DNA of 64,000 bases, taken from positions 246,953,741-247,017,740 of the forward strand of contig CM041465.1 of the NCBI GenBank assembly GCA_023213395.1. The letters run 5' to 3'. This DNA comes from Cycas panzhihuaensis (lineage: Eukaryota > Plantae > Cycadophyta). Under the pieces are notes generated by a model, which did not search any database, had not been told where the DNA came from, and worked only from the letters and a program-made list of their open reading frames with translations. The position numbers were made by a program, and so were the translations under genes. This document shows, one piece after another, positions 2,866-47,647 of this stretch; the stretch's first letter is position 1, and each line of letters begins with the position of its first letter.

Positions 2866-2999
2866 GGATGGCTCTATTGAAGATTCTTATGTAAAGAATC
2901 CAACTGATTCTACACATGAAGTTTATAATTATAATCCAAATAGAAATACCAAATTTTAACTAGGTCAAATATACTAAAAATTTATATACTTTAATATCA

Positions 3000-3454
3000 T
3001 ATTAAAATGATCTAAAATGACTTATATAGAAGTGTATTATCAAGCAAGATATAATTGTAATATCACAAGGTCAATTAAGTATATAATGAATATAATAAAT
3101 GAATAAGGATAAGGGCATAAGAGATAATAATACAAACATCATATATATGCCATATTTAATATGGAAAACCCATGAATGGGAAAATCACCTTTAAATATTT
3201 ATAAGATCTCTTATTAAGAAGTATAATAAATGAACCACAAGGTGAGTTATTCTACCCTCATAAGGACTAGGAGATCTCTCTCTCTCTCTTTCTTTTCAAT
3301 ATTTATTGCTCTTATATAAATATATCATTGTATGAACATCTAATCATATTTCACCATTTTATCAACCTATTAGATCATGTGTGTAGGAACCTTTCACATT
3401 GACCAAGGATAACCTGACTCATTAATTAAATATTACATCTCTAACACTTCAACA
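3000..3454 (-). repeat. 3' LTR of the 3000-7018 element
   Basis: Aligns by eye end to end with 6511-7018; ends ..ttcaaca next to the PPT. Confidence 0.88.
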
Positions 3455-6400
3455 TTCCCACACTCCTTTAATATTTAATTTATCAGTCTTCAAATCTTTA
3501 TCTTCATGTCTTTATCTTCATGCCTTTATGTGTTTATGTTGGATCACTTGCTCATTTATCTCCTCATTTTACTTATAAATTAATTTGTTAAACTTGTCTT
3601 TACTATGTTTACCTCTTACAAGCAAAACTTATCATGTCATAAATAATGTACCACACCATAACAATGTATCATACCAACCACATCTAAACCATTAATTAAT
3701 CGAATATAACTCATGACTCTTAACTCATCATAATATAGAAAGTTTTCTCCTCATCAACTTCACATCTCCACTTATAAGCTATAAAACCAAACTCATCAAA
3801 ACACCAATAAACAAATTCAATGATGTCCATATAAAATAATAACTATCTACCAAAATGTATGAGTAACTAGTTGCTACAATCACTAGTTATCTAGGATATA
3901 TTTCTTATATATGGTTCATTAGCTTTATAAAAATAAAAATATAACATACTACAATTAACTAAATATATTATATTAGAGTAACCTATGAATCATTTTTTGC
4001 CTCTTGTTGACGAGATATATATGTACTACCTCCATCAATGATTATATATATGTCTTTGCAGGTTTAATGGTAATCTATCTTATTAAACATCTTCTCCAAC
4101 CACTAACTTTGGGAACAAGGAGTACTACCTATTTTATCAAGCTAGTTGTAATAAGGTAATATATAATAATGTGTTTCCATGCATCTTGTCATATGTGGCA
4201 ATTAGATTTATAACTAAAAAATACATATCAATAGAAGTCCTTAATAATTAATACTAGTTTTATAAATGATTCATGACTATTATTTCTAATTTCAATCAAA
4301 CTTCTGAGATTTCTCCTTCATATTATATTAGGTAGATACACATCACTTAATTCATTAAACTCAACCCCAATTGCAATCCATTTCATTCAAGCATCATTCT
4401 TAATTATTCAGGTGATGTCTTTATCATCATTCATTCAACCCATATATCAAATTAGGTGATTACCTTTATTTCTTCATTAATCCATGTCAAATTCTTTTAA
4501 GTAGGGAGATTTAAAAATATGTTTAGCATGTGTCTTTTTGGTTCTCACATGTGTTTCACTTTATTTCTTTGATTTATTAAATGTGTTATAATTGAGTTAT
4601 TTTTATCTATTTTATTAAATTTTCACCCAACCTTTATTTTAAATCCTTTATTAATTATCCATTTGTGTCAACATAAACTTAATAGCTTTTAAGATCACTA
4701 AAAAATTCTAAAACATAACTTAAATTGCTAAAAAAAATAGAACTTTTATCATGCCAAAATTTTCTTACTCGTCTTTATTAATTAAATCTCTATTATTCAA
4801 GCTTTAAACTATGCCTTGTAAGCTTGGTTTTGATTCTCTTTGAACCCTCTTTCCAATGCAACTGATAGCTTGAAAATCTAACTTCATATAATAAATTTAT
4901 ACCTTAAAAACTAGCAATACCTTATGAAAAATCAAAATAGGGTAGAAAATTTAATTGGTACTATGGTCACATGCTTATGCCCATGTAATTGTTTGGCTTC
5001 ATGAAGAGGGCTATGACAAATTTTAAAATAATATGCAAAATAATTAAATTCAATTTTAAACTTTAAAATATATATATATGTATGTCAATTTCATATAATC
5101 ATTTTAAAGTTTTTTCCCAAAATTTCTACATTCATCAATTGTATGCCATATAGGAAATGAGATTTAAAGGATTTAGGTGATGAAATCTATGGGTATCTAC
5201 ATTTAGGGCACCTCAATCTTTACAAGAGGGTTTGAAATCCATGATTTTTTATTGATAAATACTCTTCATACAAATTGTGCATGAGTTATAATTTCATTTC
5301 TAGTTATTAAATCTCCACACTAGAATGGTAATAAAAAACTCAATAAAGAGATCTTAAGTATCCTCTTTCAAACTCCTATTAGTGCATTATGTTATAGATC
5401 CAATGTTTTTCTTTATCAAATATTTGTGAGCCTAATTACCATGTAGACTATGCTCGACCATTTACCTGGATAATATGATGACCTTATTTAATCTTATATC
5501 AACACTAAAGACTTTGTCATTGTATTCTTGTATGTGATTTTATCATTTTGTAACTAGAAATTTTCCTTAATAGATTATTCACATTTATGAATTAAATCTC
5601 TATCACTAGATGGGTGCTCTATGAAATTTATATTATTTTTAATAAGGTATCAAATCTTTGTTGCCAAGGACCTAGTGAAATTGTCATGGAGTTGAGGCTT
5701 AACATCCATAGTATTATGCTACATGGTGTGGTTCCTACCTAGGATTAAAATATTAGTTTCCTATAGAAGATGACTATGGGCTATTGAAAGTTATTATTCA
5801 TGACCAAGATATTCTTATTTTCTCATCATATTTCTCGGTCAACAATGATAATCATGCCAAATATAATTATGAATAAATGATAATTATTGTCCACATAAAC
5901 TTTCCATATAACTTAGTCTTATTATTAGTGCCATATTGCTCTATCAATCTGCTTCTGTTAAACTTAATTTATCTTTCATCAAACTATTGCATATCACTTG
6001 GTATAGGCTTACACCTATTTCACATTCACTAATAGAGTATTGGCTCTTTGTCTCACTCTTACAAGGCGATGAATCCTATTTGGGTGATCAACTTATGGTT
6101 ATACCATTAGACACCTACATGTTCTAGTATATGGCACTAACATGCATTAATTAAATGTCTATAATAAATAGATAAAATGAATAATATTACTCATCAGTAT
6201 CATATCACTCTTTACATTGTATATACAATTTTAACTTCACTTTATCATGCCCTAATATCATAATCACATCATTGATATAACTGGTTTTTGGCTTCATATC
6301 TTTGTCATACTATCTCTCATACTAGCTCATTTTAGCTTTCATACTGCATATATGGATCATCCTTAGATGGTGAAGATTATTACCATGTGTGTGTGGTATT

Positions 6401-6510
6401 CTTCTTTCCTTGCCAACTGTGAACCTACTTCTATTATGTATCTCTATTTCACCAAGATCTTCTTCCTCCTATACTCTAAGATTTTGATCTTGACCTAAGC
6501 TCTGATACCA

Positions 6511-6795
6511 TATTAAACTAATCTAAAATGACTTATGTAGAAGTGTATAACCAAGAAAGATATAACTAAAATATCATATGATTAATTAAATATATAATAA
6601 ACACAATAAATAAATAAGGATAAAGGCATAAGAGATAATAATGCAAATCTAACATGTACGCCATGTTTAATGTGAAAAAACTATGAATAGAAAAAATTGC
6701 CTTTAAATATTCATGAGATCTCATATTGAGAAGTATAATCAATGAACCACATGGTAAGTCATCCCATCCTCACAAGGAGGACTATGATCTCTCTC

Positions 6796-6861
<66 letters not shown>

Positions 6862-7018
6862 CAATACATATTACCCTTATATAAATATATTATTGTATTG
6901 ACATCTAATACATTTTACCATTTTATCAACCAATCATATCATGTGTGTGGGAACCTTTCATGTGAACTAATGATAACTTGACTCATTAATTAAATATTAC
7001 ATCTCTAATACTTCAATG
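6511..7018 (-). repeat. 5' LTR of the 3000-7018 element
   Basis: Directly abuts the Met PBS (6499-6510); homologous to 3000-3454. Confidence 0.88.
6788..6858. repeat. (TC)n microsatellite, about 35 units, inside the LTR
   Basis: Direct reading, one G interruption; the sister LTR has only about 7 units at 3275-3289. Confidence 0.97.
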
Positions 7019-7329
7019 TTTTAACAAAATATACTTTTCATGATCTTTATTCTAGGTGTATCTATAAGCTCTCATTAACCATTTTAATATAGTTAATTGT
7101 TTCAACTAACTATGCTCTCTCTTAACACTAGTTAGGTCCCATACCTTATCCTATTTACTACTAGGGATTGATTGTATGATTGCATTAGAATTTAGTAGAT
7201 TGGTTGGTATGATGGTTGAATGATTTCATTTGATCATGTTTATGCTTGACCAATATTGTGGATGATGTAAAGATCATAAAAGTGTCAATAAATTTGGCTT
7301 ATTCTAACCCCCTTCAAAGCTCTATCTTA

Positions 7330-10300
7330 TGTTATCAACCTCATTAAAAAGTAATTTATTAGTTATATTTTATCGAATAGGCATGTTGAAAAGATGTGAC
7401 TTTTGATAAAAAGGGCCTATAAAAATGGCCATCAACATATTGTAAATATCATTCATCTTTATCAATCAAATATATTTGGTCTTATGACTATTAATCTATT
7501 GACTAGCTCTTGTGTGTTCGTTGGTGCTCTCTAAAATCAATTAATTATACTTCAGTTACGGAATTGGTTTATAACAATTGGTGTCAGAGCTTCACTTCTA
7601 GTACCTAGGGGATAAGAATTAATAGATCCATTATATACAAAGCAATCATCATCTACAAATTAACCTCATATAATAACACTCATATAAGTGAGAACACTCA
7701 ACTTTAAAGTCATCCATTAGATTTATATGTGACAAGGAGTTTTGTCTGAGAATTTAACATATAAGGCAAGGTGTAAAACTTCTATCATAATTATCATATG
7801 AAGAAGTCACAATTCTATGTTGGTGCCTTTGTCAATCTACAAAACCTAAGTTGTATATAGTTCGAATACATCACCTTTAATAGTTGAGTATATACACCAG
7901 ATGCCCTCTATGTAATATCATGTGGAGGAATCATAATTGTAAGTAATTATAGTATGCATATGCTACATTATTCTATAAACTAATATAAATATAATATATT
8001 TCATATAGCCTGCATAAACTTAATATATTATTTATATCCAATGTTGCACTACCACTGCATAACCTTCTTCCTTCATTTTTTTTGTGGATCTATCAGGTCT
8101 GGTTGAGATCCTCCTATCCATGTTCTGTATTTATTATGCTATGATTTTCCCTGCGTCCTTCTTCCATTCGCATCTGCATTGTTCTATTTCCCATCTTGTC
8201 ATCTTCCTATCTTCCCTGCATCACTCTTTCTATCTTTTTTTTCTTTCTATGTCTACGTACCCATTTTGTATAAATTTCCACATTTGCATTGTGTCTGCAT
8301 TACATCCTTCCATTTATCATTTCGTCTTCTACATTCCACATTCCACAGCTTGCACCGTCATTCTTTTGTCGCCCTAATTACACCCCCATAATCCTATATA
8401 TTACATTCTATATAATCATTCAATTATACTACTAACATATTTTATCATAATTGTTTATTACTTATTCCTCTAATATTTGTGCATTTTTATATATTCTTTA
8501 AATATCAATATATACTCATTTTTAATATTTTTCTTATTTCTTATTTATATATCAATTAATTATTATATATATTTACTCTTACCTTTAATAAAGTTGACTA
8601 CAATATTTAATATTCAGTCATAATAATTTATTTATAAGTTATTAATTTCATCAAATTATATTTATTTATATTTTGATAAAATAAATATTCAATCTATCCT
8701 CTCAATCTTCATCCATCTTAATCTACTCATCTCCGTCTAACCTTCTATACCTTGTTCATTTCCATCTATTTATTACATTCCATTCCCTTCACATAAAACA
8801 TATAAGTAACCTTTAATGTGAGTCTCAATTCCTTGCATTACTCCATATAGTTGTATGTTGCTGCCCTTTTGAAATGACTTCTACCATGCTTGTAAAAATA
8901 TATAAAAAAAAAAAAAGAGTATTCCTATCAAAGCACTTATTATCATATGCATTTAAAAATACTAAATTAGATTTATCATTTAATGTTGAAGGCATATTTA
9001 TAACAAGTATATCACTCTGAATTTTACCTCAAGACATGTAGTAAAGATATATTGATAGTGAGAAATAGGTAGGAAAAATTGTAACAACCAATAATCATTC
9101 AATAACATTTAATTTTGATTGTCATCATTCCACTTATGTTTGCAACACATACAAACACCTATTTAAGATAGGAAATCTTGTTTATTTTGGGTCTCAAAAG
9201 TTCTCACTGCACAAGATTTATACATCAATAAAAGAAGTCAAAGAGGTTAATAGGAGAAGCATACACTATCCATTTTCTCTAACAAACCAAACACGACAGT
9301 CAAGTAGTGGAACTGCACATATATAATTATTAAAGTAATGAACACTAAAGATATGGAAGATAACACCATCCAAAAGGATATCATCAAACTAATTACTCAA
9401 GCTGTGCACAAAGCACTCTAGACATCAAATGCTCTCTTAAATCATAGCCACAAGTAGGAAAGAAGATATGATTATTCTAGACTTAGAGGACGAAGTAATG
9501 AGCCGACAATCTTATATCCAAAATCGGGCTATAAAAAATTATTTAGGTCCTCAGATGACTCTAATTAAAATTAAAAAGTAAGCTATTAGAAAATATCTTA
9601 ATGAATATCGAAATTTAACTCTTGAGAAATAGAAAATAATGGGTTTTTAAGCATACTTCAACTACCTTTAAAGTATATAGACACAGAAAAAGAAAAATTT
9701 AGAAAAAATAACAATATAACATTTCAGTATGGAGCAGAAATCACATGAGATGAGAGTATGAATCCAATAAATGGAAAACTACTTTTGTTTAGTGGAGATT
9801 AAACTAATAAAACAAGTTCCTTTAGCCACCCTGCATATGGATGGAATAGCATGTGAATGGTGGCAGTGTCTTGAATGAACTTCTATTCATAATTAACTTC
9901 CAACCTAGAAAGAGTGTGTATTTATTCATCAAATGGTTTGAAATAATATCTAATCATGATTACTATTGTGAGTTATGAAGATTAAAACAAACTGGCTCTG
10001 TGGAAGAATAATGTGCAGCATTCACAAAATTGAGTTATGTTTTGGAAGACATTCCCATGAATCGACTTATCCAATTATATATAGATGGCTTAATCATTGA
10101 AATCCAAGTGGATGTCAAAATTCAAGAGCCTAAGGATCTGAATAAGATAATACAACTTGCCAAAATATAGGAAAATAAGGTTAATGAATTACAGAAAGTA
10201 AAAGTAAGACCATGTATTCCTCCTTATGCTTGATCTAATCCTCCTTCAATAATACGATATGGTCTAGTGCCTAGTAGAGTTACTCGATGAGCTAAACTAG

Positions 10301-13300
10301 TACTTCAAAGGACTATATCTAATTAAGAAGATTTACCAAAAAAGAACCTCTACTTCAAATGTGCCAAAAATGGACACCTAATTATAAATGTTAGAAGAAT
10401 TAATTATATACAATTGAATTATCCCTGGTAGCCAAAAATGAGGAAATTGAACAAGAAGATGATACAAAAAGTGACCAAGAGAATGCTTCAGAAACTTAGG
10501 ATGACCAATATAACCAGGAGGAGGATGTCTTAAAAATGTCATTCTTAGCTATAAGTGGTCTTACAAGATCTAATATGCTTAAACTACAAGGATTTATTAA
10601 AAATTAGGCTATTGCAATCCTAATCGATCTCAAAAATACCCATAATTTCATTAATAGAATCTTGACTCAACACTTAAAATTGTTTTCATATATAACAACA
10701 TATTTTTAAGTAAGTGTTAAGGGTTGCCAAGTTATATCTAGACAAGGATTGATGGAAAACCTTAAGATCTCAATAGGAAATGTCATTATTAAAGAAAATT
10801 TTTATGTACTTGATGTTGGTGAAGTGGATATTATTCTAGGAAGTCAGTGGTTAAGAACCTTGGGAACTTTTAAAATGAACCTTGAGGAATTATTTATGAG
10901 ATATACGAAGGAAGAACCATTATCCTTCAAGGAGAGAAACCAGGAAATAGCCAACTAATATCCTATAAATGAATGAAAAAATTAATCAGGAAATCGTACG
11001 GTGGTATTCTGATTTAACTCTTCTCTATTCAAGCAAAAATAACACTAATAACAAAAGAAAACGATATGTAAAAAGTTATTAAAAAATATAAAGAAGTTTT
11101 TCAAAATATTCTAGCCAAATGACCTCTAGATAGAGGGTTGGAATATCAAATTGAACTTGAAGTAGGTACTAATTTGATTATTATCCAGCCATATAAATAG
11201 CCACATCATTATTAGAATGAAATTAAGAAAATTGTATAAGAATTATTGTATCTATGAGTAATAACCCCTAGTAAAAGCCCTTTTGCAGCTTCTATAATCC
11301 TGGTAAGGAAAAAAATTAAATCTTATCATATGTGCATAGATTATCGAGCACTAAATAAGGTTAGAATAAAAAATAAATTTCCTATACCAAGGATTGATGA
11401 GTTGCTATACGAATTATAAGGAGTCGAATATTTTTTAAAAATAGACTTAAAGTCTAGTTACCACCAAATTCGAATTAAAACAGAGGATACATATAAAACG
11501 ACCTTTAGCACATACCATGGTCATTATGAATTTAAGGTAATGCCCTTTGGCCTAACTAATGCATTGGCCATGTTCTAAGCTATTATGAATAAGATTCTTA
11601 AGCCCTTCTTGCAAAAATTTATCTTAGTTTTTTTCAACGACATATTAGTCTTCATAAAAAAGTGTGAAGAACATGTAAACCGTCTTGACCAAGTACTAAG
11701 CATATTAAAGGAACAAAAGTTTTATGCTAATCAATTAAAATATTATTTCAATTTGAAAGAAATAGAATATTTGGGTCATCTCATTTAAAAAGAAGGGATT
11801 AGAGCTGATCCAAGAAAAGTCAAGGCAATTCAAGAATGGCTGATGCCCAAAAATATTACTAAACTTTGAGGATTTTTGGGATTAACAGGATATTATCGAC
11901 ATTTTATTAAAAATTACATACAGAAAATAATTGACTTAACTTGTTTATTAAACAAGGATTCTTTTTAATGGAATGAAGAAGTTATAATGTGTTTCGAATA
12001 AGTTAAGTAAATAATGACCTAATTATTGATGCTAACATCACCTGATTTTCCTAAAAGTCTTATAATAGAATATGATGCATCTAAAATAGTAATCAGCATA
12101 GTACTGATGCAAGAAGAAAAACACATCTCATTTTAGAGTAGAAAACTAAACAACAAAGAGGTTCTCAAATATGCTTATGATAAAGAAATGTTAGCTATTA
12201 TACTCGCTTTGGTTAAATAACATTAATATCTATTAGGTAGTAAATTATAGTCAAGACAGATCATAACAATTTATAATATTTATTGAAACAAAAAGAGTTA
12301 TCCCCTGAACAACAGAAATGGATAAGTAAAATTCAAGCATTTGATTTTAATATAACATACAACAAGGGTAAAAAAAATGTGGTGGTTGATGCATTGTCTC
12401 AAAAAGATGAAGAAAGTGCAGAATCTCAACTAAAAGCCATCTCAATAATAGAACTAGTATGGATCATGGAGTTATAATCAGAATATGTAAAAGATCCTAA
12501 CATTCAATAACTTATTCAAAGAATTCAACAAGGAAAAGAAGTTAAATTCGAATAGAGAAATGATATCTTATGGTATAAAGGATGAATATTCTTAGGTGCA
12601 AATTCAGCTTTCTGTGCTAAGATAATAAATGAAGCACATATAGTACCTACAGAAGGATATGAAGGCTTCTATAAAACATATCTTTGAGTTAAACAGTCAT
12701 TTTTCTAGAAAGGAATGAAAGAGAAAATTTAAAAATTTGTAACTAAATGCACAGTTTGCTAAGCAAATAAATATAAATGTACCGCTACCCCTAGACTGTT
12801 CCAACCTCTCCCTAGTCTGCAACAAAAATGGGAAAGTATTAGCATGGATTTTATCACTGGTCTACCAAAATTAGAAGTGAAATATGCTATGTATGTGATT
12901 GTGGATCGCTTAATAAAATTTGCTTATTTTACATCCATTCAATCTAATTATAAAGCTCAACAATTAGCTGAAGTGTTTGTCAAAGAAATTTACAAATTAC
13001 ATTATTTTCCACAAACCATTATTAATGATAGAGATCCTAAATTCTTGAGCCATATCTAGCAAGAAATGTTTCGATAAGTGGGTACTAAATTAGAAATGAG
13101 TAGCAATTATCCCCTATAAATAGATAGACAAACTGAAGTGGTTAATAAATATTTAGAAAATTATTTATGGATTTATGTAGTAGATAAATAAAATTCATGG
13201 GTCAAATGGCTACATTTAGCTAAAGCCTAGTATAATTCTTTTTACCATTCATCCATTAAAATGACCCCATATCAAGCATTATACAGATATCAACCAACTC

Positions 13301-14153
13301 AATTAAAGGATTGGTTAAGCAAGGATAATAAGGTTTTGGCAATTAATAACTACCTCCAAGAATTATAAAACATAATTCAAATATTAAAGTGACATTTAGA
13401 AGAAGCTAGAAATCAAATGAAATAACAAGTAGATAAACATTGTACTAAAAGAATATTCAAAGTTAGAGATTGAGTCTATGTGAGACTGCAACCACACAAG
13501 TAATCATCATTAAAAAAATCTCAGAAGGAGAAATTGAGTTCTCAATTTATGGCCCTTTTTGGGTTAAACAAAAAATTAGAGAAGTGGCTTATGCCTTAGA
13601 ACTTCCTACTTCTAAATTACACAATGTGTTTCATGTGTCGCATCTCAAAAAGAAAATTGGAAGTCAAGTATAAGTGCATATGGAATTACATCTCTTAGAT
13701 GAAGAAGGCAAACTAATCCTATTACCAGAAGCTATCCTTGAAGTTCAAGAATGGCATTTGTGGTTGAAGACCATTCGAGAATACTTGATAAAATGGAAAT
13801 AGTTGCCTCATAAAGATGCTTCCTAAGAGTCCTTTGATTTTATCAAACTTCATCCTGATTTAAGAAATGAGAGTTTCATGGCCGAAACATCTTATGGGGG
13901 AGGAATTGTTATGAACCTCCTTAAAAAGTAATTTATTAATTATATTTTATCAAATGGGCGTGTTGAAAAGATGTGACTTTTGATGAAAAGGGCCTATAAA
14001 TATGGCCATCAACATATTGTAAACATCATTCATCTTTATCAATTAAATATATTTGGTCTTATGACTATTAATCAATTGACTAACTCTTGTGTGTTCATTG
14101 GTGCTCTCTAAAATCAAATAATCATACTCCAATTACAGAATTGGTCTATAACA
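7330..14153 (+). mobile_element. Full-length but decayed Ty3/gypsy chromovirus inserted in the Tat-1 5' LTR
   Basis: 247-bp LTRs 7330-7576 and 13907-14153 (TGTTA..TAACA); perfect TSD TCTTA (7325-7329, 14154-14158); PBS tggtgtcagagc 7579-7590; PPT gggggaggaa 13896-13905; empty site visible in the sister LTR at ~51130-51145. Confidence 0.96.
9352..13895 (+). pseudogene. gag-pol pseudogene of the chromovirus (gag, protease, RT, RNase H, integrase, chromodomain)
   Basis: LHMDGIACEWW (~9830); LID..THNFI (~10620); [51 protein letters not shown] (11330-11650); YDAS..YDKEMLA (12070-12200); SMDFITGLP, INDRDPKF, QTEVVNK (12840-13150); YGPF..HNVFHVS (13550-13640); EYLIKWK*LP..DAS*E (13780-13830). Numerous stops. 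Confidence 0.95.
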
Positions 14154-14391
14154 TCTTACTTCCATGATTGCACTCTTTCTAGATCACCTTTAACGTGATG
14201 AATCTTACTTTCCTACCTTTTTTTCTTTTAAGTTCCCCTTTGTACTTTACATAACCCTTCATTGCTTCTAGACGTCACTATTCAACTATTTACTATTTGA
14301 CTTTTTTTTTTACTTTTTTAATGAAACTCTCAGTTTTCAACACTCTTTAATAGGTTATATTTTTTACTGTAGGTTGTACTTTTGGAGTTAT

Positions 14392-14820
14392 CTGAACCCC
14401 GTTCTCCTCATCCTAAGGATCACAGGTTCGATTCTCAATGTGGTAAACAAGAAGAATAGGAGCACCAAAAGTGTTTGGGTGTTGATATTTCTAGCTTCGT
14501 GAGTTCAAGAAAAAACTATGGTCTATATACAATCCTACCATAGGGTATGCAAAGACTCTGGATCCTAATATTAAAATTGAAGTGCCAGATGATAATAATG
14601 GTCTTTATGCAATTTACATGTTGGATCCTTCATGGCTACCCAAAGTTCTTCACATGTCTGAGTTATATTATTTTCATGATATGATTGATATGCTGCTTGA
14701 ATGCGGTTATGAAAAGGGGGTCAAATTATTTGGCTATGGCTATGATTTTTGCCAAAGAAACAGAACTACAAAATTGATGGATGGCTTTAAGAAAAGGTTG
14801 GAGACAGCTTACAAGTCTTC
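14392..14820 (+). pseudogene. LCAT3: Uninterrupted coding fragment of LCAT3-type phospholipase A1 (N-terminal third)
   Basis: LNPVLLI..GSIL..VWVLIFLA..LWSIYNPTIGYAKTLDPNIKIEVPDDNNGLYAIYMLDPSW..YYFHDMIDMLLECGYEKGVKLFGYGYDFCQRNR..KKRLETAYKSS matches the remembered plant LCAT3 sequence (PDDDHGLYAIDILDPSW, FGYGYDFRQSNR). One frameshift; no intron seen. Confidence 0.92.
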
Positions 14821-15095
14821 AATGTTGCCCCCTATTAATGACTGGCATTGACAAAAGCTTATCTATTTCTACTAGAGAAAAAAGCCTGTAAGATTGCCAA
14901 GTTTTCACACATGTGTTGGTTCTAGGGGTGAGGGACAAATGCCTGAGAGCTATAAGGAGAAACAAATTGAGGTTATGTATGATACAACAGTGACAAGTCT
15001 AGATGTTCAAGCACAAACTCTGACAACAGCCTCAAGGAGCCATCTAAAATATAGGTCTCTTATTGTTGCCACTAGTTGCACTGTAGCGAAGTTGC
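14821..15095 (+). pseudogene. MDAR: Uninterrupted coding fragment of plastid/mitochondrial monodehydroascorbate reductase
   Basis: [59 protein letters not shown] matches the remembered MDAR5/6 sequence [52 protein letters not shown]. Confidence 0.92.
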
Positions 15096-15177
15096 TGGAT
15101 AGTATTTTTATTTCTTTTAATAAGGGTTTTTTTTTTTAAGAATGTTATTTGTTAAATGGGAGATTCCTCTCGACGAC

Positions 15178-15423
15178 AAACAGAGGAAGTTGCAACTGAC
15201 TCAAAAACTTTGGAAAGGCCCCTCCCAAGGATGAGGATGATGATGATGACTTGGACCTCTTTGGTGAGGAAACTTGGGATGACGATCTCTGGACTAAAGT
15301 TTCCCAAATGTGTCTCGATGATACAATCATATCATTGATCTTCTAGCTTTAGGATTCCCCGGCAAGGGTGTCAGTGTGAATATAGAGGGAGTCACTTCAG
15401 TTGCTTCACAGGCTTCTGAAACA
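15178..15423 (+). pseudogene. Elongation factor 1B (beta/delta-type) fragment, two halves in swapped order
   Basis: 15183-15274 reads EEVATDSK(frameshift)KAPPKDEDDDDDLDLFGEET (eEF1B acidic motif). 15301-15423 reads FPNVSR*YNHIIDLLALGFPGKGVSVNIEGVTSVASQASET (eEF1B N-terminal domain end). Confidence 0.88.
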
Positions 15424-15431
15424 AGTTTTAT

Positions 15432-15712
15432 ATAGCATAATGGTCTGCAACAATGTCAAATTTTAATATAGAGAAAGAAAATATTGAGAGGCTGAAAAAG
15501 GCATTTATTGACACTTCTTTTAAAAAACTATGAAGTGCTAAAGGAGTACTCGAACTTCTTAAAAACTTCAAAGCTATCAAAAGTGAGGTGCAATCAACAA
15601 GCAAATGATGGATAAGTTCAATGACATTCTTACACAGTTTCTAAAGGAGATAGATCCTACAAGAGGGATTTTTGATCAAAATTTTGCTAAGCCTCCTATG
15701 GCACGTAAGCAG
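15432..15712 (+). pseudogene. Fragment of axonemal dynein heavy chain (inner-arm I1-alpha / DNAH10-like, N-terminal tail)
   Basis: WSATMSNFNIEKENIERLKKAFIDTSFKKL*SAKGVLELLKNFKAIKSE(frameshift)AINKQMMDKFNDILTQFLKEID..IFDQNFAKPPMARKQ matches the remembered DNAH10/DHC1 signature FIDxSFKxLRSAE..AxNRQMMxKFNDIL.QxxxEID..PP. Confidence 0.85.
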
Positions 15713-15845
15713 TAGTGGAGAATATATTGAAGCAAACTTTAGAAAAGATATTATGTTGTTGGGCTACTACGGCCTGATTTCAGGATTCTTAAAAGTATCT
15801 TGATATGAACATGAGCTTCAATGATTACACTCTTTTCTAGTCACC

Positions 15846-17209
15846 AAATGAAAATGCTCATGTGCATTCTCTTAGTCGATTATGTTTGGAGAATGTTGTA
15901 CACCATAGCTCCTTACAAGTTATGGTACATGTGCTAAAATATATGCTAGAGATGTCAAAATATATATATATAATATAAATCTTATAAAAAAATAAAATAT
16001 CAATGTAAGGAGCATGGAAATAAACACTTAATGATCACACATATCTGAACTGAGACAGAGGCATAGATGGTATCATTTTCGTTGGCAAAATAGCATATGT
16101 GTTCAATATTTAACCATACAAAGATTATGCTATAAAACCAGAAATTTTTCAAATATGTTGGAGAAGATTTATCAGAGAACCAAGAAATATATATTGTTTA
16201 AATTTGAAAAAAACTATGAAGAACCTGGTAAGCAGTTGTTGCAGATTTGTAGCAGATTGACTTCCAAAGATGAGATCTCCTTCCACATAAATCAAAGCTT
16301 CAAACAGATTTCTCTAGTAGACAGATCTACTATGATGTATGGATTGTTAGGCTGAATATACACCAAAACTTGCAGATCTGAAAAAGGAACTTGAAAAAAT
16401 GGTCAAATATATGATAAAATATACAGATCTAAAAGAAAACTTTAATAAATATTACAGATCTGAAGTAAGTATTGCAGATCTAAAGTAAATATTGTAGATA
16501 TAAACAAAATAAACTAGAAAAATGATGAAATATTTGATAAAATAAGCAGATTTGAAGAATATATGGTAGATCTAAAGAAAACTTTAAATAAATCTTGCTT
16601 ACAGTTATGCTCCTGCACAGATCTAAAAAAAAGTAATGAACAAATAGATAAAATATACCTAAAAATAGTCAAATATATGATAGAAATATATAAAACTTAT
16701 TGATAAAACCTCTTGTAGAGTGATAAAAACTTGATATTTATTGTTTACAGTTATGCACCTACACAAATTCTTTAAAAAACTTCAAATGGAGATGTAATAG
16801 CCTAGCAACTTGTGGCAACCTTGGCTATGATACCAAATGATGGAAAATAATCGATGGAGAATAGGGCAGAACATAAACAAATAATCATAGATCAATATAT
16901 CATTGTTGTATAAATATAAGATCCTTTGTATTCAATCCATTGTTTGAGAGAGAGCATTACAAATATCCAAAAGTAGGCAATGTTTAAAGACACTAGGGTT
17001 GCAAACCCCTCTAAATATATAGTTTTAGGGAGGAGGAAAACTCCTCAACCTCTAAAATTTAAACAATAATAAAATAATAACTTAAATCAAATCAACCTTG
17101 CCTTATACTTACCTACACATGTGAGCACCTACATGTATAAATTGATGAGAGTGAGGTGTGCACTCTTGGTTGGAAGGTAGGAGTGGGGTGATGTGTATTA
17201 ACCCCAACA
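15846..17209 (-). mobile_element. Truncated LTR-retroelement remnant: single 5' LTR (16838-17209), Met PBS and repeat-rich leader
   Basis: Reverse-complement PBS gctatgatacca 16824-16835 followed by TG..CA-bounded 372 bp with a minus-strand TATA (ctatatattt, ~17013-17022). Leader 16220-16630 holds many degenerate (g/a)cagatct units. No partner LTR in the window. Confidence 0.72.
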
Positions 17210-17217
17210 CTTATAAG

Positions 17218-19735
17218 TAAAAATGTGACTTACTCATAGATTGCATTTTTAGTGTATTTTGGGTCATGGTTTTCATTGTAGCTTATGATTTTCACCGAAG
17301 GTCACATTTTTCATATTCTTCACACACACACACATACACATATATATAGATAGATAGATAGATAATTATAGGGTTTCTTTTCTACCATATAGACATCAGT
17401 CTATAGGAAAATACAACCCCACCTTACCATGGTTTTATACCTTCTATCCCTCTATTTTTTCTGATAAAAATCTATTTATTTTCTTAAGAAATGGAGGAGA
17501 ACATTTGGAGAAATTGAGTGTTACCAAATTTTAGACTCATCCTTGTAACCTTCACTTGCACCTTGAGAAGGATTCTTTAAAGCTTGATTTGGATCCATTT
17601 ACTAAAGAAATCAAAGACTTAGAGTTGCTTACACTTCCCTTCTTCTCTTTTCTTCTCTTCGCTACCTTTCCTTCACATCTCATCTTCTTCTTTAAGTTCC
17701 ATTCTCTGCTCTCACTCTTTCCCTTCTCTTATTTATTACCCCTTTTACTTGTTGTAACTAGTTGGGAGCTTTGATTTGGAGGGCTTGGAAAGACAAGGCA
17801 TAATCCTACATTTTTCTCAAATGAATACTTCTTTATTGGTAAGTCCATGTGTTTTATTTTAAGTTTATTTCTTGTTCCTTATTGAATAGGTAATTAGGTT
17901 ACAATTTTAGCTAATCTTGCAATATATATTAGATTGCTCTTATGATCTTTACACTTGTTATAAGTTTACTTATTCTTTGAGTTTCTATTCAATAGTGGGG
18001 AACTTTTAAACCTTCAAGTTCCTACTCATAAACTAGAGAAAGCCCTAATACATCTAACCTTTGTACTAATGAGCTCTATAAGGAGGTAAGTGACTTAACG
18101 TAGTAGTATAGGATATGGTGGCTTATACTCTTCCTCCATAGGATTCTAAACTCCCTTTTTCTCCTTTCTTTATCCTCTCATAATCCTCTAGGTATAGCCA
18201 AAATATTATTAGGGTTATGAGAGTATAATTCATTTTATAAGAATGTTTCTACAATAATATTTTAATTTGTAGTAAGTACAACTATCTCATTAACATTATA
18301 ACCTTAATTGGATGTTGAAGCTTTTGTTGAAAGACTCCTGTGATAAATGACTATGAGGTTGGCCCCTCTTTACTTATTATTTTCTCCTTACTTTGCTCTT
18401 TCTTTTAGTAAAAGAAATATACACAAAAGGAAAGGAAAAAAGTGACTAAGAAGGATGTCTCTTGAGTGATCATTATTATTTTAGATAGCTTGGTTGAGTA
18501 TTAACTTGGAAACATCATTCTATTTTCTTTTCTTAAAAGAAGAAATAGAAAAGTAACTAGGATAAGTATAAGAGCACTTAAAGGACCCTTTCTTTTTCTC
18601 CCCGAAGATGTGTTAAATGTAAAATTGATTTCTCTTTTCCTTTAAAATAAAAAAGAAAAAAAAAACACAAATGAATTGATTACACTAGCTATGATCATAT
18701 CAAAGAAGGTTAGCTCTTTTTGTATTTGATTGAGTTAATATGTATTTGTTGCTTACATGTACAAGAAAATCACATTTTAGAGCTACATTTGGGATTTGTA
18801 TCTCTTCTTTTTATCTGGCACCCTAGCTTAGTTCCCATCCCTTTTCTTAAGACTTATTTGATTGATTAGAACTTAACATCACTGGCTTACAAACTCATCC
18901 TCTCTTATAGATAAATACCTCTCATCATAAAGGAATATTTGATCAATCAAGACTTCACATCACTAGCATATAAACTTCCCTTTCCTTAGGATTGGTTTTT
19001 CCTACTGTATTTCAAACACTAAAAGTGACAACTTATCATCACACTTTTGGTTAAAAGTGACCATTCTTCTTCATCTATATTCACCTCTAAGGGTAAGAAC
19101 CCTCTAGACTTGGACATGGGTAACCCTTGGTTGTCCATCCTCACCAGTGGATCATCATTAGGTGAGAAAGCCCTAATAGATAACCCCTAATAGGGTCATT
19201 AATTTAGGGTTTGAGCTCTCCTAAGTCCTTACACTCATCAGTCCTCTCCTACTCTATCTAGAACGATATAGATTTTTTACCCTTTGGGTGGGTTAGTGGT
19301 CTAAGTTAGGGATTTTCTTATACAGAGACTTTTGGAAGGGTAGATAAATAGGAAAACTTAGGTTATTTGATTTGGGATAAGGTCCCCTATTGATCCTTCC
19401 ACACATTAGGAGGTTGTTTGATCTCTTCCTTGAATTAAAAAGGGACTTTGCTTATTTGGATTGATTTGATTTAAACTAATTTTCTTTCTTTTTAACCTAG
19501 GCATGTTGCTTCTTAGTTTTGATTTATTTTGTAAATAGTAGAATTGACAAACAACAATCTTTTAGATCTTGTATTTATTTATTTGATACATACATAGGGG
19601 TTCATCCCTTCTCATCAAGAGAAGGGTTGAGGGTTACCCTTGAGCCATATCACCTTTGCCCTCATCCATATACATTCTTTCCTAAGTGGTTTATTATAAG
19701 CCTTTATAAGTGATTTATCCTGAGACCCAAAACCA
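17218..19735 (+). repeat. Main piece of the Tat-1 5' LTR
   Basis: Collinear with 51381-53925 (e.g. cttgagaaggattc..aaagcttgattt at ~17562 and ~51742; tcatcaagagaagggttga at ~19612 and ~53802); ends aaaacca before the PBS. Confidence 0.92.
17321..17363. repeat. Compound (CA)n(TA)n(GATA)n microsatellite
   Basis: Direct reading; absent from the equivalent position of the sister LTR (~51527-51545). Confidence 0.9.
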
Positions 19736-28090: not shown

Positions 28091-28849
28091 ATGGTATGAA
28101 AAGAGTGGATCTATCATTCATCTCCATGCACTAAACATAAAGGCAAACATGGGAACAAGAGAGACTTGAGAGAAAGAGATAAGTTCTTACAAAATGGGGA
28201 GGTAAGAATGAGCCTCCTCCATTGAGCTTTTACTTTTACATTGAGAAAGGAAGCATTAGAGTTAGGTGAAATGAAATTACACATAATACACATGAAAGTG
28301 TATTTCACTTAAGTAATCTAATTTAAAGTTCACTTAAGACCCTTTTTAGAAATAATCAACTAATATAATGACCTTATGACATTAACCCATTTCAATCTCC
28401 CCCTTAATGGTAGGTGGTCATTTCATCCTATTTTATTCTATCTTATGAGGTCTTTATTTGAGCCTCTTACAAAGCAAACTACTATGACACTTTTGTGGGA
28501 AACTCTCATGGAGAAGAAAACCCATAGATTTTCTAATCTACTAACCTGGCTCAGGTGGCTCTTTAAATGAAGCCAGATAACCAATTAGTACAATGAATTT
28601 TGTAGCTAAAATCTACTGAGTTTCCATATACAGTGTGGTCATTCCCCATGCCCTTTTGGGTTTTCACATGTTCTAATTTTTTAAAATGATACAACCCTCA
28701 TCCTTTCGTGTCCATAAAGGGGTTTTCACGAATGGGATAGAGCAGAGACTTACTTTTATCCTTTCATGCCCATAAGGAGTTTTCATGAATGAGGTAGATT
28801 ATGATGGTCACATTGTCATCTCCTTTAATCAGTCAAAGATGGAGGCCCT

Positions 28850-31800
28850 AAGGCTGAGTTTCCTTCAAAATTATTCAAACTCCACCCTCTTCAATAATTT
28901 GGTGAAGATATCAACCACTTGATCTATTGTGGGGTAGTACTTAAGTTGAATTATGCCATCATGAACTAATTCTTTAATCTTATGGACTTTTGTATATATA
29001 TGTTTGGTATGATCATGAAATATAAGATTTTTAGCTATTTGGATTGTAGATCGATTATCTACATATAAGCTAGTAGAACTTGTTCGGGTGGCATTTAATG
29101 TATTCAACAATTTTCTAAGCCATATCACCTCCTTGATTGTCTTAGAAGTAGCAATATATTCAACTTTGACAGTTGAGTCTGTAACTATCTTCTTCCATCT
29201 AGATCTCCATGATATTGGTATTGTTCCAAGAAATGTTGTGTACCTAGATGTAGATCTTTATGTGTCTTTATCTATGGCAAAGTTTGAGTCTTTGTATACA
29301 TAAAGTTTAAATTTTGCATTAGGTTCATACAACAGACCATATTTGCTAGTCATCTTTAGGTACCTTAACACTTGTATTATAGCTTGTTAGTGATTCTGCT
29401 TAGGATTTGTCATGAATCTTATAAGAATACTAATAGAGTGTGTAATATCTAGCCTTATGTTAGTAGTATAGATGAGATTACCTATAAGTTGCCTATAGAG
29501 TGTTACATCTACCTCCCTAGTGTCACCATTAACTGAGAGTTTAACATTAGGTTCCATAGGTATATCCATTGGTCGAGTACCTTCCAACTGAAACTTTGTT
29601 AGAAGATCATTGATATATTTTTCTTGGGAGAGAAATATTTTGTCATTCTTTTGCATTACTTCAATTCTTAAGTAATATTTCATCAACCCGAAGTCAAACA
29701 ATTCAAAAGTTTTAGTAAGGTCTTTCTTTAATTGGTTGATTACTTGTTCACTATTCCTTGTTATTAGTATATCATCCATAAAGATTAAGAGGTAAGTGAT
29801 TTTATCATTTTGGTGCTTGATGAATAGTGCTACATCAATGTCTTGATAGTCACAAACCTCATATCCATTTTGTCTCATTCTTTTAGACAACTTGGTAAAC
29901 TAAGCATGAGGGGCTTATTTTATGCCATATAAGGACTTTCTGAGCCTGCAAACCTTATGCTTCTAACCGATAATCTTGTATCCTTTTAGCTAAGCCATGT
30001 AAATTTCTTCTTTAAGATCCCCATTAAGAAATATAGTCTTAACATCGACTTGGTGGATTTTCTAACCTTATTGAGCAGCCAAGGCTATAAGAGTTTTGAT
30101 TGTAGGACACTTGGTTATAGGAGCAAAGATTTTTGTGTAGTTGATGCCTTCCCTTTGTGCGAATCCTTTTGCTACTAGCCTTACCCTGTGTTATTCTAGG
30201 GTGACATATGATCTATACTTATTTTTGAAAACCTATTTATTTTAAACTACCTTTCTTCTAAGTGGTAGATTAATAAGCTCCCATGTATCATTCTTGATAA
30301 GAGATTAGTACTCTTCGTTCATGGCATTTCTCCAAGTTGCATGCTTTATAGCTTCTTAGTATGTTAGGGGCTCTTTATTAAGAGTAAGGTGCAGTTCTAT
30401 TAGTTTAACCTCAATGAAAAGTGATTCATGCATCCTTGCTCTATGGGCACTTCTAGTGCTAGTTTTGCATATCTCATATGATCGTATGTCCTTATGTAGC
30501 TGGTAGGCTTTACAAAAACCTCAAGTTGGAAATGAGGTTTTCATTTCCATAGCCTCTTGGTCTTTATTTTGATCCTGGAAAGGATCATGTGAAATGTTTG
30601 GCATGGAGAAAGTTAACGATGCTAGAGAAGATGGCCCTTCTACTATGGATTTACCTTTGTGAACTTGGCTATTCATAAATGATAGTGTTGGATGTGTACA
30701 CATTGGCTGGGAGTCACAACTTATATCCTCTGGGGCTCTATTATCATATTCTAATATTTTGAGCAACTGTTAAGCATCTCCCCCCTTAAATTTTAGAATT
30801 TAGACATCAAATTTAGTAGCATCATTAAATCAATATAAAGGTATCTTAAAGTCAAGTCTGAATAATTGATCTTCAGTCTCTGCAAAGCTAACATCTCTAG
30901 TGATGATAATTTTACGTTGTGAAGGTATAAAAACTTTGTACCTCTTTTTGTCCATAGGGTATCTGACAAAGATACCTTTAAGGGCTCTATCTTAGAGCTT
31001 ATTTATGTGTTCCTCCAGAATGTGAGCATAATAAGTAGAGACAAAAATTCTGAAGTGGGAGATAGAGGGGGTTTCTCCATACCACATTTCATGTGAAGAG
31101 GGGCCAAGATTGGAGGGACTAATAGTGTTGATATAATACATAATAGTCTAGATAGCCTCAGCCCAAAGATAGATAAGGACATCCTTATATACCAACATAG
31201 CATGAGCCATGTTCATGATAGTCCTACTCATGCGCTCGGCAACTCCATTTTGCTGAGGTGTACCTACAATAGTGGTTTGATGCTTGATTCCATGTTGACG
31301 TAGATATAATTAAAACTCATTGGACATGTACTCACAATTATTGTTAGTCCTGAGTATTTTAATCTTGAATCCATATTTATTTTCCACACAGGGCTTGAAA
31401 GCTTAAAACATAGAAAAAGCTTTATCTTTCTTTGCAAGAAAAGCAACCCATTCTTTCTTGGTTAGATTATCTCTAATTACTGGATTTGGGTCCAAGTTGA
31501 TTATTGTGGCCTTGGCCTTGAGACTATTTTTGTTAGAGTTAAGGAGCTTGTTGACCAAGAAGATGTTATCCTTATTGTCTACCTTTACCTCTTCCACAAG
31601 GATTACTACCTCTGCGAGAGTATTGGCCTTGATTTTTAGTATAAAAAATATCTTCTTCCACTTCAAAAATAGCATCAATAGGATCAGATGTAGTGGCAAA
31701 GTTGGTATCAAAGGTCTTATCAAATTCAATGAATTTATCAGTAAGAGCCTTAAAATTTAGGGTCTTCAAAGTGCCACTAAATTAAAGATTTTCTAGTAGA

Positions 31801-32335
31801 TTTTTGTAATCTAGAATATGGAGACATGCCTAATTTAAGAAAGCCCATGTAATACATTAAGTTTTAAAATCTTTATTAATGGCTTACTTGATTGGATGAA
31901 GTAGATTGATTGTCTCACTTGCATATCCTTTTTATATTTTTAATTTGTTCATCTTCAGCACTAAGTGAACAAATTCTAAGTATGATTTAATGTCAAAATT
32001 CTTCTTAAAAACTTCAAGAACTTTCTATGATGTATCATGTATAGCTTCATTAATAAGATTATACAAGGAATAATCAGTGACAAGAAGTATCCCTGCATGA
32101 ATTTTATCATAATCAAGTTCCTATTAGCGTTTAGTTGTAGCTTCAGTGAGAGTAGTTATCACACCTCCAGAAGCAGTTGAGGTAGTTGTAACTGCAATAA
32201 ATAGTGTAAGTTATAAGTGATCTCTCTAAAGACCTTCATACTTTACAATATTTCTAATACCAATGAATCATATGTCCCAATTTTCTTTCCCTTTAAGAAT
32301 GTAGTTTGCATTTTGCTTGAACTATGAAGACATGG
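28850..32335 (-). pseudogene. copia gag-pol pseudogene (gag, partial integrase, RT, RNase H)
   Basis: RNase H LYVDNRSTIQIAKNLIFHDHTKHI (ORF 28871-29128); RT LLIFMDDILITR..YRQLIGNLIY (ORF 29387-29890); RLVAKGFAQREGINY (~30140-30180); integrase QQNGVAERM (~31230-31255); gag ~31550-32335. INT lies before RT, the copia order. Confidence 0.94.
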
Positions 32336-32480
32336 TGTCTTTTGATAAGGGAAGAAATAAATAAGGGACTATAAAAGTGATGGCAATAAATGACCAATAA
32401 TTATTTATAAGTAGTGTAGAAAAAGGAAGGAGAAGTGAGAATGGTTGCTCAAAGATTAAAAGAGCAACTTAGAGAAAAGT

Positions 32481-32684
32481 CACTAACACTTGTGACAAAT
32501 ATTAACCTAATACAACAAGAATATAAGAAGCACTATAATGAAAATTGGCCACTAACACTTATGGCAAATATTAAACTGATGCAGTAGGAATATAAGAAAT
32601 ACTATGATGAAAATTAGCCACTAACACTTGTGGAAAATATTAACCTAATGCAGCAGGAATATGATAAGCATTATGATTATAATT
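32481..32684. repeat. Three tandem 69-bp repeats in the copia leader
   Basis: Units start cactaacactt at 32481, 32550 and 32619. Confidence 0.92.
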
Positions 32685-33585
32685 ACACTATGGATCACAT
32701 TTTACAAATAAGTAAGTGATTAATATACAAGATTATAGGCCAATGTAGAAGCTAACATCATTGGATGTACACAGCTTGAAACACAAATGTAGGATGTCTA
32801 CTCATCCCAATAACCTCTAACTTGTGTTTAACATATAGTTGAGGTTGTTAAAGGGATGCCTAGGCTTATAGTAGAATTAAGTTGGCATTCACCCATGATA
32901 CTTGCAATTGTTCTTGGTGATGAAATCAAAGTCACAACAAAGCCCAGGTACTCCCAATCCTCACCAAGTTCACTAATGAGCAACCATATACCTCCTTTAA
33001 AGAGTGGTACATGTATTACCATGGCTATAATAGATATTAGATTAGGTATATTTTAATCTTATTTTTAAAGTTTCAGTTTTCTTGGTTGGTTATCAAGATG
33101 ATCCCTAATTAAGGCATAATGGTATGACTAACCAAACCTTACCAATATTCTAGTTTAGTCCAGTCCCAACTTAAAACCCATACCTCCTTTATGGAATGAT
33201 ATTCTACCAACTAAGGTATCTCAACCTTGGCAAGTATGTGAACAAGTATAAGATGGAAGAAAATAATGTATGTAATATGTTCCTTTTAGGGAGAGTGAAA
33301 AGATTATCGAATTTACATCAAATGTGCATATAACTAAAGAATATAATGCTTACTTGGAGTGCTTTGGAGTGTTTGCTTGGAGTGTCTTTAAAGTGCTTAC
33401 TTGAAGTGATTTTGGAATTTTGAAATGTAATGTTAACAACTGAGTGAGGACATCAGATATTGCTCTGATCTAAGTGTTTTTTTACTTGCTTTTACAATGG
33501 GATTTTAAGCCTTATAAAAAGAAGGAAGAAAATTTCTTCACTTTTCTTTTTTTAATACAAAAAAGGTAGTCTTTACTAAATTAGT

Positions 33586-33888
33586 AATAACTTTCTCCCA
33601 CAATAACAAAATTGAGTGCCAATTTTTATGCTACAAACTAGACTTAGAGCTTCATCTTTAGGAAGTAGAATTAGGTCCAAATGAGTTCTAGAAAATTTTT
33701 TGTAGTCCTACAAAGTTAGAAGACTAAAAATAATTGTTGTTCACCAAAATAATAATAACTTTCTCATACAACAATGAAATTGAGTGCCAATTTTTGTACT
33801 ATAAAGTAGACTTAGAACCTCATCTTTAGTAATTAGAATTAGTTCAATTGGAGCTCTGTAGAAGATTTTATAGACCTATGAAGTTTAG
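33586..33888. repeat. Tandem duplication (period about 167 bp) in the copia leader
   Basis: taataactttctc..aaattgagtgccaattttt..tagacttaga..catcttta at 33586 and 33753. Confidence 0.9.
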
Positions 33889-34606
33889 CAAGTAAATTTT
33901 ATTTTTACAGAAATTTTAGCTTGTTAATATCTCATTAATACATGATACCATATGAAATTTCCATCATTTTTTTATCACCAAGATCCCAATATAGGAAAGG
34001 TGAGAACATATAATGATGGATATGCTATGATAAGAGGGGAAAGAAAAGAATAATGGGATAGCATAAATGGTCACCAAAGCATTAGAATCCTTGGGCCTTA
34101 CAACTCCTTTCATTATGCTTCCAAACTTGCAAAAGAGAAAGGAAAAGTAAATAATACTAAATATACTATGATAAGAACTTGAAAATATTTCTTAATCCAC
34201 TTTCATAATCTTCTTCACCACATGGATTGTGGGGGAGAAGGAAGTGATGACTCCATTGTAAGTGCAAGTGAGGAATATGAAGGAAGCAAGCTCTAGTACC
34301 ACATGAAAAGAGTGGATCTATCCTTCATCTCCATATATTAAACGTAAAGGCAAGCATGGGAGCAAGAGAGACTTGAGATAAAGAGAGAAGCTTTCACAAA
34401 ATTGGGAGGTAAGAATGAGCCTCCTCCATTGAGCTTTTACTTTAATATTAAGAGAGGGAGCATTAGAGTTAGGTGAAATGAAATTACATATAATGCACAT
34501 GCAAGTGCATTTCACTTAAGTGATCTAATTTAAAGTTCACTTAAGACCCTTTTTAGAAATAATCAACTAATGTAATGACCTTATGATATTAACCTATTTC
34601 ATGGTA

Positions 34607-38690: not shown

Positions 38691-39139
38691 CTACCCCCTT
38701 GGCAATAGAGCCTCGCCACTCAGAAGCATGGTACGATGGTGAATGCTGGCAACACAACTATCAGTAGCACATGTGCATGTATATATATATATATATATAT
38801 ATAAATCATGATCATAACAGGAGATAATGGTGCTGGAAAGTGTCATGGCGGAATGCGTAGATCCGAGGACAGGGGTGGAGATGACATAGGGGCTACCTAT
38901 GTGCCACCCGGGAATCAACCGGAAGCTAGAAAGATGAGGGGGCTTCTCCCATCGTAAAAGTGCAAAGAGATGCATGATAAAGTCAGGTAGAAGAGATAAA
39001 TGAGCAAACCTAGTAGTCGCTATAGTTTAACCTCATTAGCAGCCAGCTTTAACAGGTGCAAACAAATCGCAAGGTGGCGTACCCGATGGCCTGAGACTTG
39101 GGTGACAGAGTGACCAGGCAAGTCTCAGCGATAGTTGAC

Positions 39140-39545
39140 AAGAAGAGGAAGGCAGCGCTCAAGGATGAGGCAAACGAGACTATCTGCCTCAGCATTGAGG
39201 GCCCAAGGAATCTATCGAATGTTAATAGACTAAAAATTATCCAGCAGGGATCTGGCAGTCGAAGCAAGGGCTCTCAAGTGAGGGCATCGCACCTGGTAAA
39301 CCTGGGTGAGATGGGACACCACAACCTAGGAGTCATAGAGAAGAGCAATCGATCCGTGATGGAAACAGAGTGTATCAATGAGGGCCTCAATAATGGCCAT
39401 GTACTCAGCTTCGTTATTGGTGGCCTTGGGGAGGAAGATTCCAGAGTGCAAGAAATCATGTCTAGAAGAGCTATGAAGAATCTATACAACAGTAGAAGGT
39501 CCAGGATTATCGTAGCTTCTACCATCGGTAAAGATAAAGAGAGAC
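39140..39545 (-). pseudogene. Archaeal-type RNase H (aRH) module of Tat-2
   Basis: Minus strand: IFTDGRSYDNPG (~39500-39536), KTTNNEAEYMAIIEAL (~39383-39427), DS*VVVSHL (~39310-39335), IPWALNAEADSL (~39175-39212). Confidence 0.88.
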
Positions 39546-47400: not shown

Positions 47401-47647
47401 AATCCGACGATTAAATAAGATGATACGCGGGATCTTCTAACAATGGAGGTAAACCAGGTAGGCGATGTGAAAAGTGTTGCATACAAAGCCTGCCAACACG
47501 TTAGAAGAAGAAAAAAGATGCAAAGTGAGTGTGTTGGGGGTTGCCCAACAAAAGATGAAGTGGAGGAGAGCACTAGAAGGTAATAGTATCAACAGGAAGA
47601 GATAGGAACTAGCTCCCTTACTGGCAAGTCCCTAGTATGGTCACCAG

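Follow-up and report, generated by a model that had tools for sequence, protein, structure and literature searches.

Patchwork of host-gene fragments lying antisense to a single long terminal repeat within an old repeat of Cycas panzhihuaensis

The DNA analysed here (the window) is a stretch of 64,000 nucleotides from the cycad Cycas panzhihuaensis (GenBank assembly GCA_023213395.1, contig CM041465.1, positions 246,953,741–247,017,740 of the forward strand); coordinates below count from its first letter. A repeat, designated R, occurs twice in the window, and one of its copies carries an insertion at 14393–17209 (~2817 bp), which reads TG...CA on the minus strand. The left part of the insertion is a cassette of decayed host-gene fragments, all reading on the plus strand, from LCAT3 (a phospholipase A1), monodehydroascorbate reductase (MDAR), probably eEF1B, and an axonemal dynein heavy chain. 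The right 1.2 kb, read on the minus strand, belongs to a very high-copy family of long terminal repeat (LTR) retrotransposons and comprises its LTR, its tRNA-iMet primer-binding site and its leader.

Self-comparison of the window showed the two copies of R to be ~80% alike. Copy B occupies 50911–53923. Copy A is made up of 7100–7325, 14153–14392 and 17210–19733, and has been interrupted twice, first by a nested LTR element (7330–14153) and then by the block studied here. The flank to the left of this block (14153–14392) is 81% identical to copy B at 51137–51380; in the right flank (17210–19733), copy B sequence resumes at 17219–17300, and 17374–19733 aligned with 51556–53923 at 79%. In the same self-comparison copy B was unbroken over the site, with 51379–51555 in the place of 14391–17373. 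The site reads ..TTGGAGTTACC|TAAAAATGTGACC.. in copy B and ..TTGGAGTTATC (insert) CTTATAAGTAAAAATGTGAC.. in copy A, confirming the empty site that an earlier note on this DNA had recognized in a second repeat copy. Contigs were also taken from four public DNA runs of four studies, all of them shallow (~6 Gb each), and in two of these (X1 and X2) contigs joined 14368 to 17212, representing R copies without the insert. The earlier note had given the insertion as ~1.45 kb; the actual insert, ~2.82 kb, is about double that and includes the LTR, primer-binding site and leader. Both R copies terminate in ...AAAAC(C/T)A, and R itself is plausibly an LTR. Microsatellites, (CA)n and (ATAG)n, were seen at 17321–17364 in R copy A, with none at the matching place of copy B.

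The empty site in copy B (51360–51392) is a perfect 12-bp inverted repeat, GGTCACATTTTT / AAAAATGTGACC, whose arms enclose a 9-nt loop. Copy A has its insertion within this loop, the counterparts of the palindrome being 14373–14392 with 17219–17230, and a palindrome loop of this kind in R could be a fragile hairpin site. If the insert begins at 14392, the flanking sequences GTTAT (14387–14391) and CTTAT (17210–17214) match at four of five positions, the empty copy being 20% diverged; taking the TG (14393) as its start leaves TTATC and CTTAT as flanks. The GTTAT/CTTAT pair may be a degenerate 5-bp target duplication of the integrase type. On its left side the insert starts within the coding sequence of LCAT3.

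The plus strand of 14380–17230 was translated in three frames, and the open pieces, each searched separately, matched ordinary host proteins. The LCAT3 fragment (14395–14821, plus strand) corresponds to about residues 24–167 of a homologue, P0006, and contains stops and one frameshift near 14497. Its piece 14495–14848 matched Pfam LCAT (E 4.8e-6) and had 147 homologues in a library of 1.84 billion proteins (best E 4e-39, 60% identity), the named closest relatives being phospholipase A(1) LCAT3. Similarity runs left to 14395 in another frame ('NPVLLILRITGSIL..VWVLIFLA' against P0006 residues 24–58); a PDB search with this N-terminal piece was blank. A tRNA-like sequence near the left end, GGTTCGATTC, was rejected as a tRNA on finding that it is LCAT3 coding sequence (G-S-I-L), and a short interspersed element (SINE) at the left end was rejected on the same ground, the sequence being LCAT3. 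Rfam and tRNA scans of 14000–17600 were blank.

Intron sites of LCAT3 were deduced from exon-limited open reading frames (ORFs) predicted on genomic contigs among the LCAT3 homologues. About 12 short homologue ORFs break off after '..ILDPSW' and continue into an unrelated tail starting V.., as expected for a GT donor site; about 30 break off after '..DFRQSNR', with an unrelated tail starting Y.., and others start at 'FVK..' or 'GYTE..'. When the homologues were placed on P0006, 15 proteins ended at residue 104 and 41 at residue 148, and starts clustered at 74–75 and 106–107. The conserved intron sites map to 14635/14636 and 14764/14765 in the window, and in some species also to 14542/14543. 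The cassette LCAT3 sequence runs uninterrupted through all of them (two, or three counting 14542/14543), indicating that this fragment came from spliced RNA. The earlier note had taken all four fragments to be intron-free and to come from reverse-transcribed spliced mRNAs. For LCAT3 both statements are borne out; the demonstration of splicing covers this one gene. At its right end the LCAT3 homology stops ~4 codons short of the next homologue exon end (residue 171), and therefore the joint between LCAT3 and MDAR is not an exon boundary.

The MDAR fragment (~14825–15115, plus strand) covers about residues 47–135, with a frameshift near 14880. Its piece 14876–15136 matched the solved plant MDARs 7bq6, 6krt and 5jci in the PDB (E 2.7e-15 to 7e-14) within residues 60–132, and its start, 'LALTKAYLF', was read by eye in another frame at ~14825–14842. 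LCAT3 homology extends to 14821, so that by this reading a few bases at most separate the two, in agreement with the absence of a spacer noted earlier. A run of ~12 T (15128–15139) was observed just past the MDAR fragment, within a 90-nt spacer (15116–15199).

The next piece (15200–15290, plus strand; ..DEDDDDDLDLFGEET..) is an acidic run followed by DLFGEET, and is probably the central acidic region of eEF1B. A language-model search matched it to EF-1_beta_acid clusters of Streptophyta (land plants) with a score of 0.90 and 186–190 of 256 features shared; Pfam and PDB searches with this piece were blank, with no match at the level of hidden Markov models. The MDAR and eEF1B pieces returned no candidate in word-indexed protein searches, both being too decayed for such a blank to be informative. 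A possible second eEF1B piece (15291–15425, plus strand; ..GFPGKGVSV..) was picked out by eye, and Pfam, PDB and language-model searches with it were all blank. If it does belong to eEF1B, it would come from a part that precedes the acidic region in the protein, and the order would be permuted here. A contig of run X2 (record 10) spanning 15141–15486 has the same order of pieces as the window.

The dynein fragment (15587–15712, plus strand) belongs to the DHC_N1 region of an axonemal inner-arm, DNAH10-like heavy chain. It matched Pfam DHC_N1 (E 1.2e-4) and the PDB entries 8glv, 9fqr and 8j07/DNAH10 (E 5e-8 to 2e-7). Confirmed dynein amounts to these 126 bases; PDB searches with two candidate pieces upstream, 15441–15530 and 15534–15605 (24 amino acids), were blank. 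A dynein heavy chain implies a host that keeps flagella; flowering plants are thereby excluded, whereas Ginkgo, cycads, ferns or bryophytes would fit. Three of the four plus-strand fragments claimed earlier, from LCAT3, MDAR and dynein, are real though decayed, and eEF1B is weakly supported. Beyond the dynein fragment, a 30-nt stretch (15816–15845, plus strand) resembles R at 14162–14190 in copy A and at 51143–51172 in copy B, ~230 bp to the left of the insertion site. The match had an E-value of 0.009, and its score was reached by two of 300 shuffles, making the resemblance no more than suggestive.

The LTR (16838–17209, 372 bp, minus strand) reads TGTTGG...CCATCA with short inverted ends. 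In the public DNA runs the summed contig depth over it was 40,000–75,000, and 44–59 contigs per run ended loosely at exactly 17209 with unrelated continuations, indicating that this position is the LTR terminus of the family. Two bases past the LTR lies a primer-binding site, TGGTATCATAGCC (16823–16835, minus strand), with one mismatch to the tRNA-iMet site; contigs that diverge at 16808, representing other family copies, read GCTCTGATACCAAATGTAGG, in which the canonical tRNA-iMet site TGGTATCAGAGC stands beside the LTR end. The leader (16014–16822, minus strand) is AT-rich and non-coding, and contains degenerate repeats of 20 nt and of ~123–146 nt. The 20-nt repeat unit, at 16394–16690, contains CAGATCT, and other family copies show many internal skips in this region. 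None of ten ORFs in the leader and LTR (15861–17044) gave a Pfam match, and no gag-pol coding region was found. The carrier is a very abundant non-autonomous LTR element on the minus strand.

The gene fragments read on the plus strand, and the LTR and primer-binding site on the minus strand; the whole cassette is therefore antisense to the element. The earlier note had invoked a retroelement, and the DNA is indeed retroelement-derived; it had overlooked that the cassette runs without a break into a leader, primer-binding site and LTR that read from the other strand. The fragments are not placed in sense orientation between two LTRs: one LTR is present, and nothing else in the insert or in the 64-kb window resembles 16838–17209. 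A normal insertion followed by deletion of the 3′ LTR was considered and rejected. R lacks no base here, so that the deletion would have needed to end precisely on the element edge.

These ends also bear on capture at the DNA level by a cut-and-paste or rolling-circle transposon (Pack-MULE, CACTA, Helitron). Elements of this kind often hold several gene pieces in one orientation, as here, but no inverted pair joins the ends of the insert, there is no 9-bp or 3-bp duplication, and no 5′ TC and 3′ CTRR with a hairpin was found in the right place. The LCAT3 fragment, moreover, lacks its introns, and the right end is an LTR terminus beside a primer-binding site. Such a capture is very improbable. 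A Helitron in particular was rejected, the right end (...CCCCAACA|CTTATAAGT) having no CTRR and the left end being LCAT3 coding sequence.

Contigs from the four public runs aligned to the cassette at 85–97% identity and crossed its internal joints. One (14499–14677, 16 mismatches) crosses an LCAT3 intron site, another (14635–14980, 26 mismatches) crosses the LCAT3/MDAR joint, and three (15141–15486, 15304–15637 and 15362–15650, with 43, 44 and 35 mismatches, respectively) cross from eEF1B into the dynein side. As the runs are shallow and the word depth of the contigs is 3–8, several copies are likelier than a single locus, and from these alignments the cassette appears to be multi-copy. The divergence between contigs and window is similar along the block (7.5–14.6%), as expected if it had spread as one unit. 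When the window was compared with related copies over 13900–18400, C>T and G>A changes were found at ~115–141 places each and A>G and T>C changes at 88–94, an excess expected of methylated, decaying repeats.

The earlier note had allowed for a misassembled block. An assembly artefact joining unrelated reads would be consistent with the outer junctions, 14392/14393 and 17209/17210, which none of the listed independent contigs bridges. The internal joints, however, recur in contigs of four runs from four studies and are therefore not misassembly, and the two flanks resume R at one point; an artefact is scarcely credible.

The recurrence of the joints bears also on the second option of the earlier note, that the block was break-repair filler, here taken as made on site, in which a double-strand break in the R palindrome was patched by end-joining, or by synthesis-dependent copying, of complementary DNA (cDNA) and nearby DNA at hand. 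Several features of the insert would suit such an event: of its two ends one is a genuine cDNA terminus and one is arbitrary, it sits in the loop of a perfect 12-bp inverted repeat, and it contains a short copy of flanking sequence from nearby. In yeast, breaks are known to receive Ty1 cDNA intermediates (PMC10802722). On the other hand, contigs that are only 85–97% alike carry the same internal joints, so that the patchwork existed or spread beyond this site. The presence of the cassette in several diverged copies argues against a one-off filler stitched together here, which we consider distinctly unlikely. Although the patchwork was not made here, entry of this particular copy by end-joining stays part of the explanation preferred below.

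Summed depth was thousands to tens of thousands over 16014–16837 against 5–80 over the cassette; the high-depth family sequence ends near 16014, and the depth then drops stepwise to ~15712. This profile would be consistent with two unrelated events that happen to adjoin, namely a chimeric processed cDNA (LCAT3-MDAR-eEF1B-dynein) and a truncated LTR element, brought together by a nested insertion and then a deletion, the cassette never having been in the element. The 30-nt R-like piece between the cassette and the LTR part, and the fact that the link between these two is seen in no contig, point the same way. Against this, no R bases separate the parts, and both outer limits lie at one point of R, which would require a deletion that reached precisely to the earlier insertion site. 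We regard this explanation as unlikely.

The reading that we prefer, and think probable though far from certain, is that 14393–17209 derives from a non-autonomous LTR retrotransposon, of which it is a copy with one LTR, and that the cassette arose by template switching on spliced mRNAs. From right to left, the insert would be read as a 372-bp LTR, a tRNA-iMet primer-binding site, a family leader of ~0.8–1.1 kb and then, in the gag position, a 1.3-kb patchwork of host cDNA (dynein, eEF1B, MDAR and LCAT3), all antisense. The reverse transcriptase of the element would have copied spliced mRNAs, hopping from template to template. Reverse transcriptase acting on an mRNA yields the complement of that mRNA, and in the insert the complement of the mRNAs is the plus strand of the element. 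Read 5′ to 3′, this strand runs through the LTR, primer-binding site, leader, dynein, eEF1B, MDAR and LCAT3; along it each piece goes from the 3′ side to the 5′ side of its mRNA, and the DNA stops ~70 bases into the LCAT3 coding region, in the 5′ part of the message. Synthesis of the element plus strand would thus have started correctly, undergone its normal transfer and copied the leader, and would then have left its template, copied co-packaged mRNAs in turn and run out. Two weakly supported features, the 30-nt R-like piece (15816–15845) and a possible jump backward within eEF1B, might represent further switches. Switching during minus-strand synthesis is the usual model, and gives the sense-oriented cargo that is commonly seen (PMC7264820).

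This copy may have entered the loop of the R palindrome through an aberrant integration, or else an incomplete cDNA may have been end-joined into a break there; the arbitrary left end together with the palindrome-loop site fits the second of these. The cassette would later have multiplied and decayed. As an alternative source of the orientation, a ready-made chimeric cDNA could have been inserted into the element at the DNA level. The cassette serves no coding function today; any transcription of the LTR would yield at most an RNA antisense to the donor genes.

Several points weigh against an origin by template switching within the element. Loss of introns is demonstrated for LCAT3 only, and the support for eEF1B is weak. 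Neither a second LTR nor a polypurine tract is present, and this copy is therefore not itself the product of a normal cycle; the putative target duplication matches at only 4 of 5 positions. In no other copy is the cassette linked by a read to this LTR family, so that two separate, adjacent events may lie behind the arrangement. Finally, a one-LTR product could not amplify, yet the cassette is apparently multi-copy, so that a complete parent must have existed, or the cassette must have spread with R or by duplication.

The window as a whole is a stack of nested retroelements. The LTR element nested in the same R copy (7330–14153) ends 240 bp to the left of the insert, and its 247-bp LTRs (7330–7576 and 13907–14153) are 92% alike. 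A large element at 35930–50434 has LTRs of 2.77 kb (35930–38690 and 47664–50434) that are 88.7% alike, its right LTR ending ~480 bp before R copy B (50911). Two further LTR-like pairs of direct repeats were found, one within 28096–34601 (299 nt, 91%, 6.2 kb apart) and one within 2989–7016 (~480 nt, 82–87%, 3.5 kb apart).

The earlier note had proposed capture of several mRNAs by reverse transcription as a route to chimeric sequences. This route is already known. The maize element Bs1 contains fragments of three host genes, usually explained by abnormal template switching in the particle (PMC13317346), and a 2026 survey reported ~400,000 gene fragments captured by transposable elements per gymnosperm genome, with all major superfamilies involved and at least two captured fragments in 13.7% of the carrier elements (PMC13477047). 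For a process counted in hundreds of thousands per gymnosperm genome, one more example changes little. What the locus offers is a clean anatomical case, in which an empty site, an LTR terminus, a primer-binding site and a spliced donor fragment are found within one 3-kb stretch. The antisense orientation, uniform polarity and single LTR, if general, would place the capture at a specific step of reverse transcription that has been little discussed; the list of donors, if the pattern is general, would point to the cell type in which the element is active. As a tentative and rather doubtful generalization, LTR elements in the genome of a plant with flagellate sperm might repeatedly capture spliced mRNAs, reversed behind the leader, through exit from the template and run-off during plus-strand synthesis. 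The products would be antisense, intron-free patchworks and one-LTR dead ends, and cargo of the dynein type would record the transcriptome of the male germ cell.

Among known systems, Bs1 and the LTR gene transductions of the rice, sorghum and gymnosperm surveys resemble the insert in having a non-autonomous LTR element with intron-free pieces of several unrelated host genes head to tail, and they are generally attributed to read-through or to a change of template while reverse transcription proceeds (PMC13317346, PMC13477047). Unlike Bs1, the insert has no hybrid ORF, has a single LTR and ends inside host cDNA. The Ty1 inserts at yeast breaks likewise have one genuine cDNA end, one arbitrary end and an incomplete element structure (PMC10802722), but they are mostly tens to hundreds of bases long and contain element sequence only, whereas this insert is 2.8 kb long, with four host cDNA pieces and a cassette that is apparently multi-copy. 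Chimeric retrocopies made by template switching of long interspersed elements (LINEs) also join intron-free pieces of different RNAs directly and in one orientation; here, in contrast, neither end of the insert carries a run of A or of T, there is no long target duplication of the LINE type, and an LTR and primer-binding site stand at one end. Pack-MULE and Helitron carriers share the mosaic of fragments from several genes in a mobile element, but the insert has no transposon termini and its LCAT3 introns have been removed. Set beside these systems, the unusual points of the insert are its antisense orientation, its uniform polarity and its single LTR.

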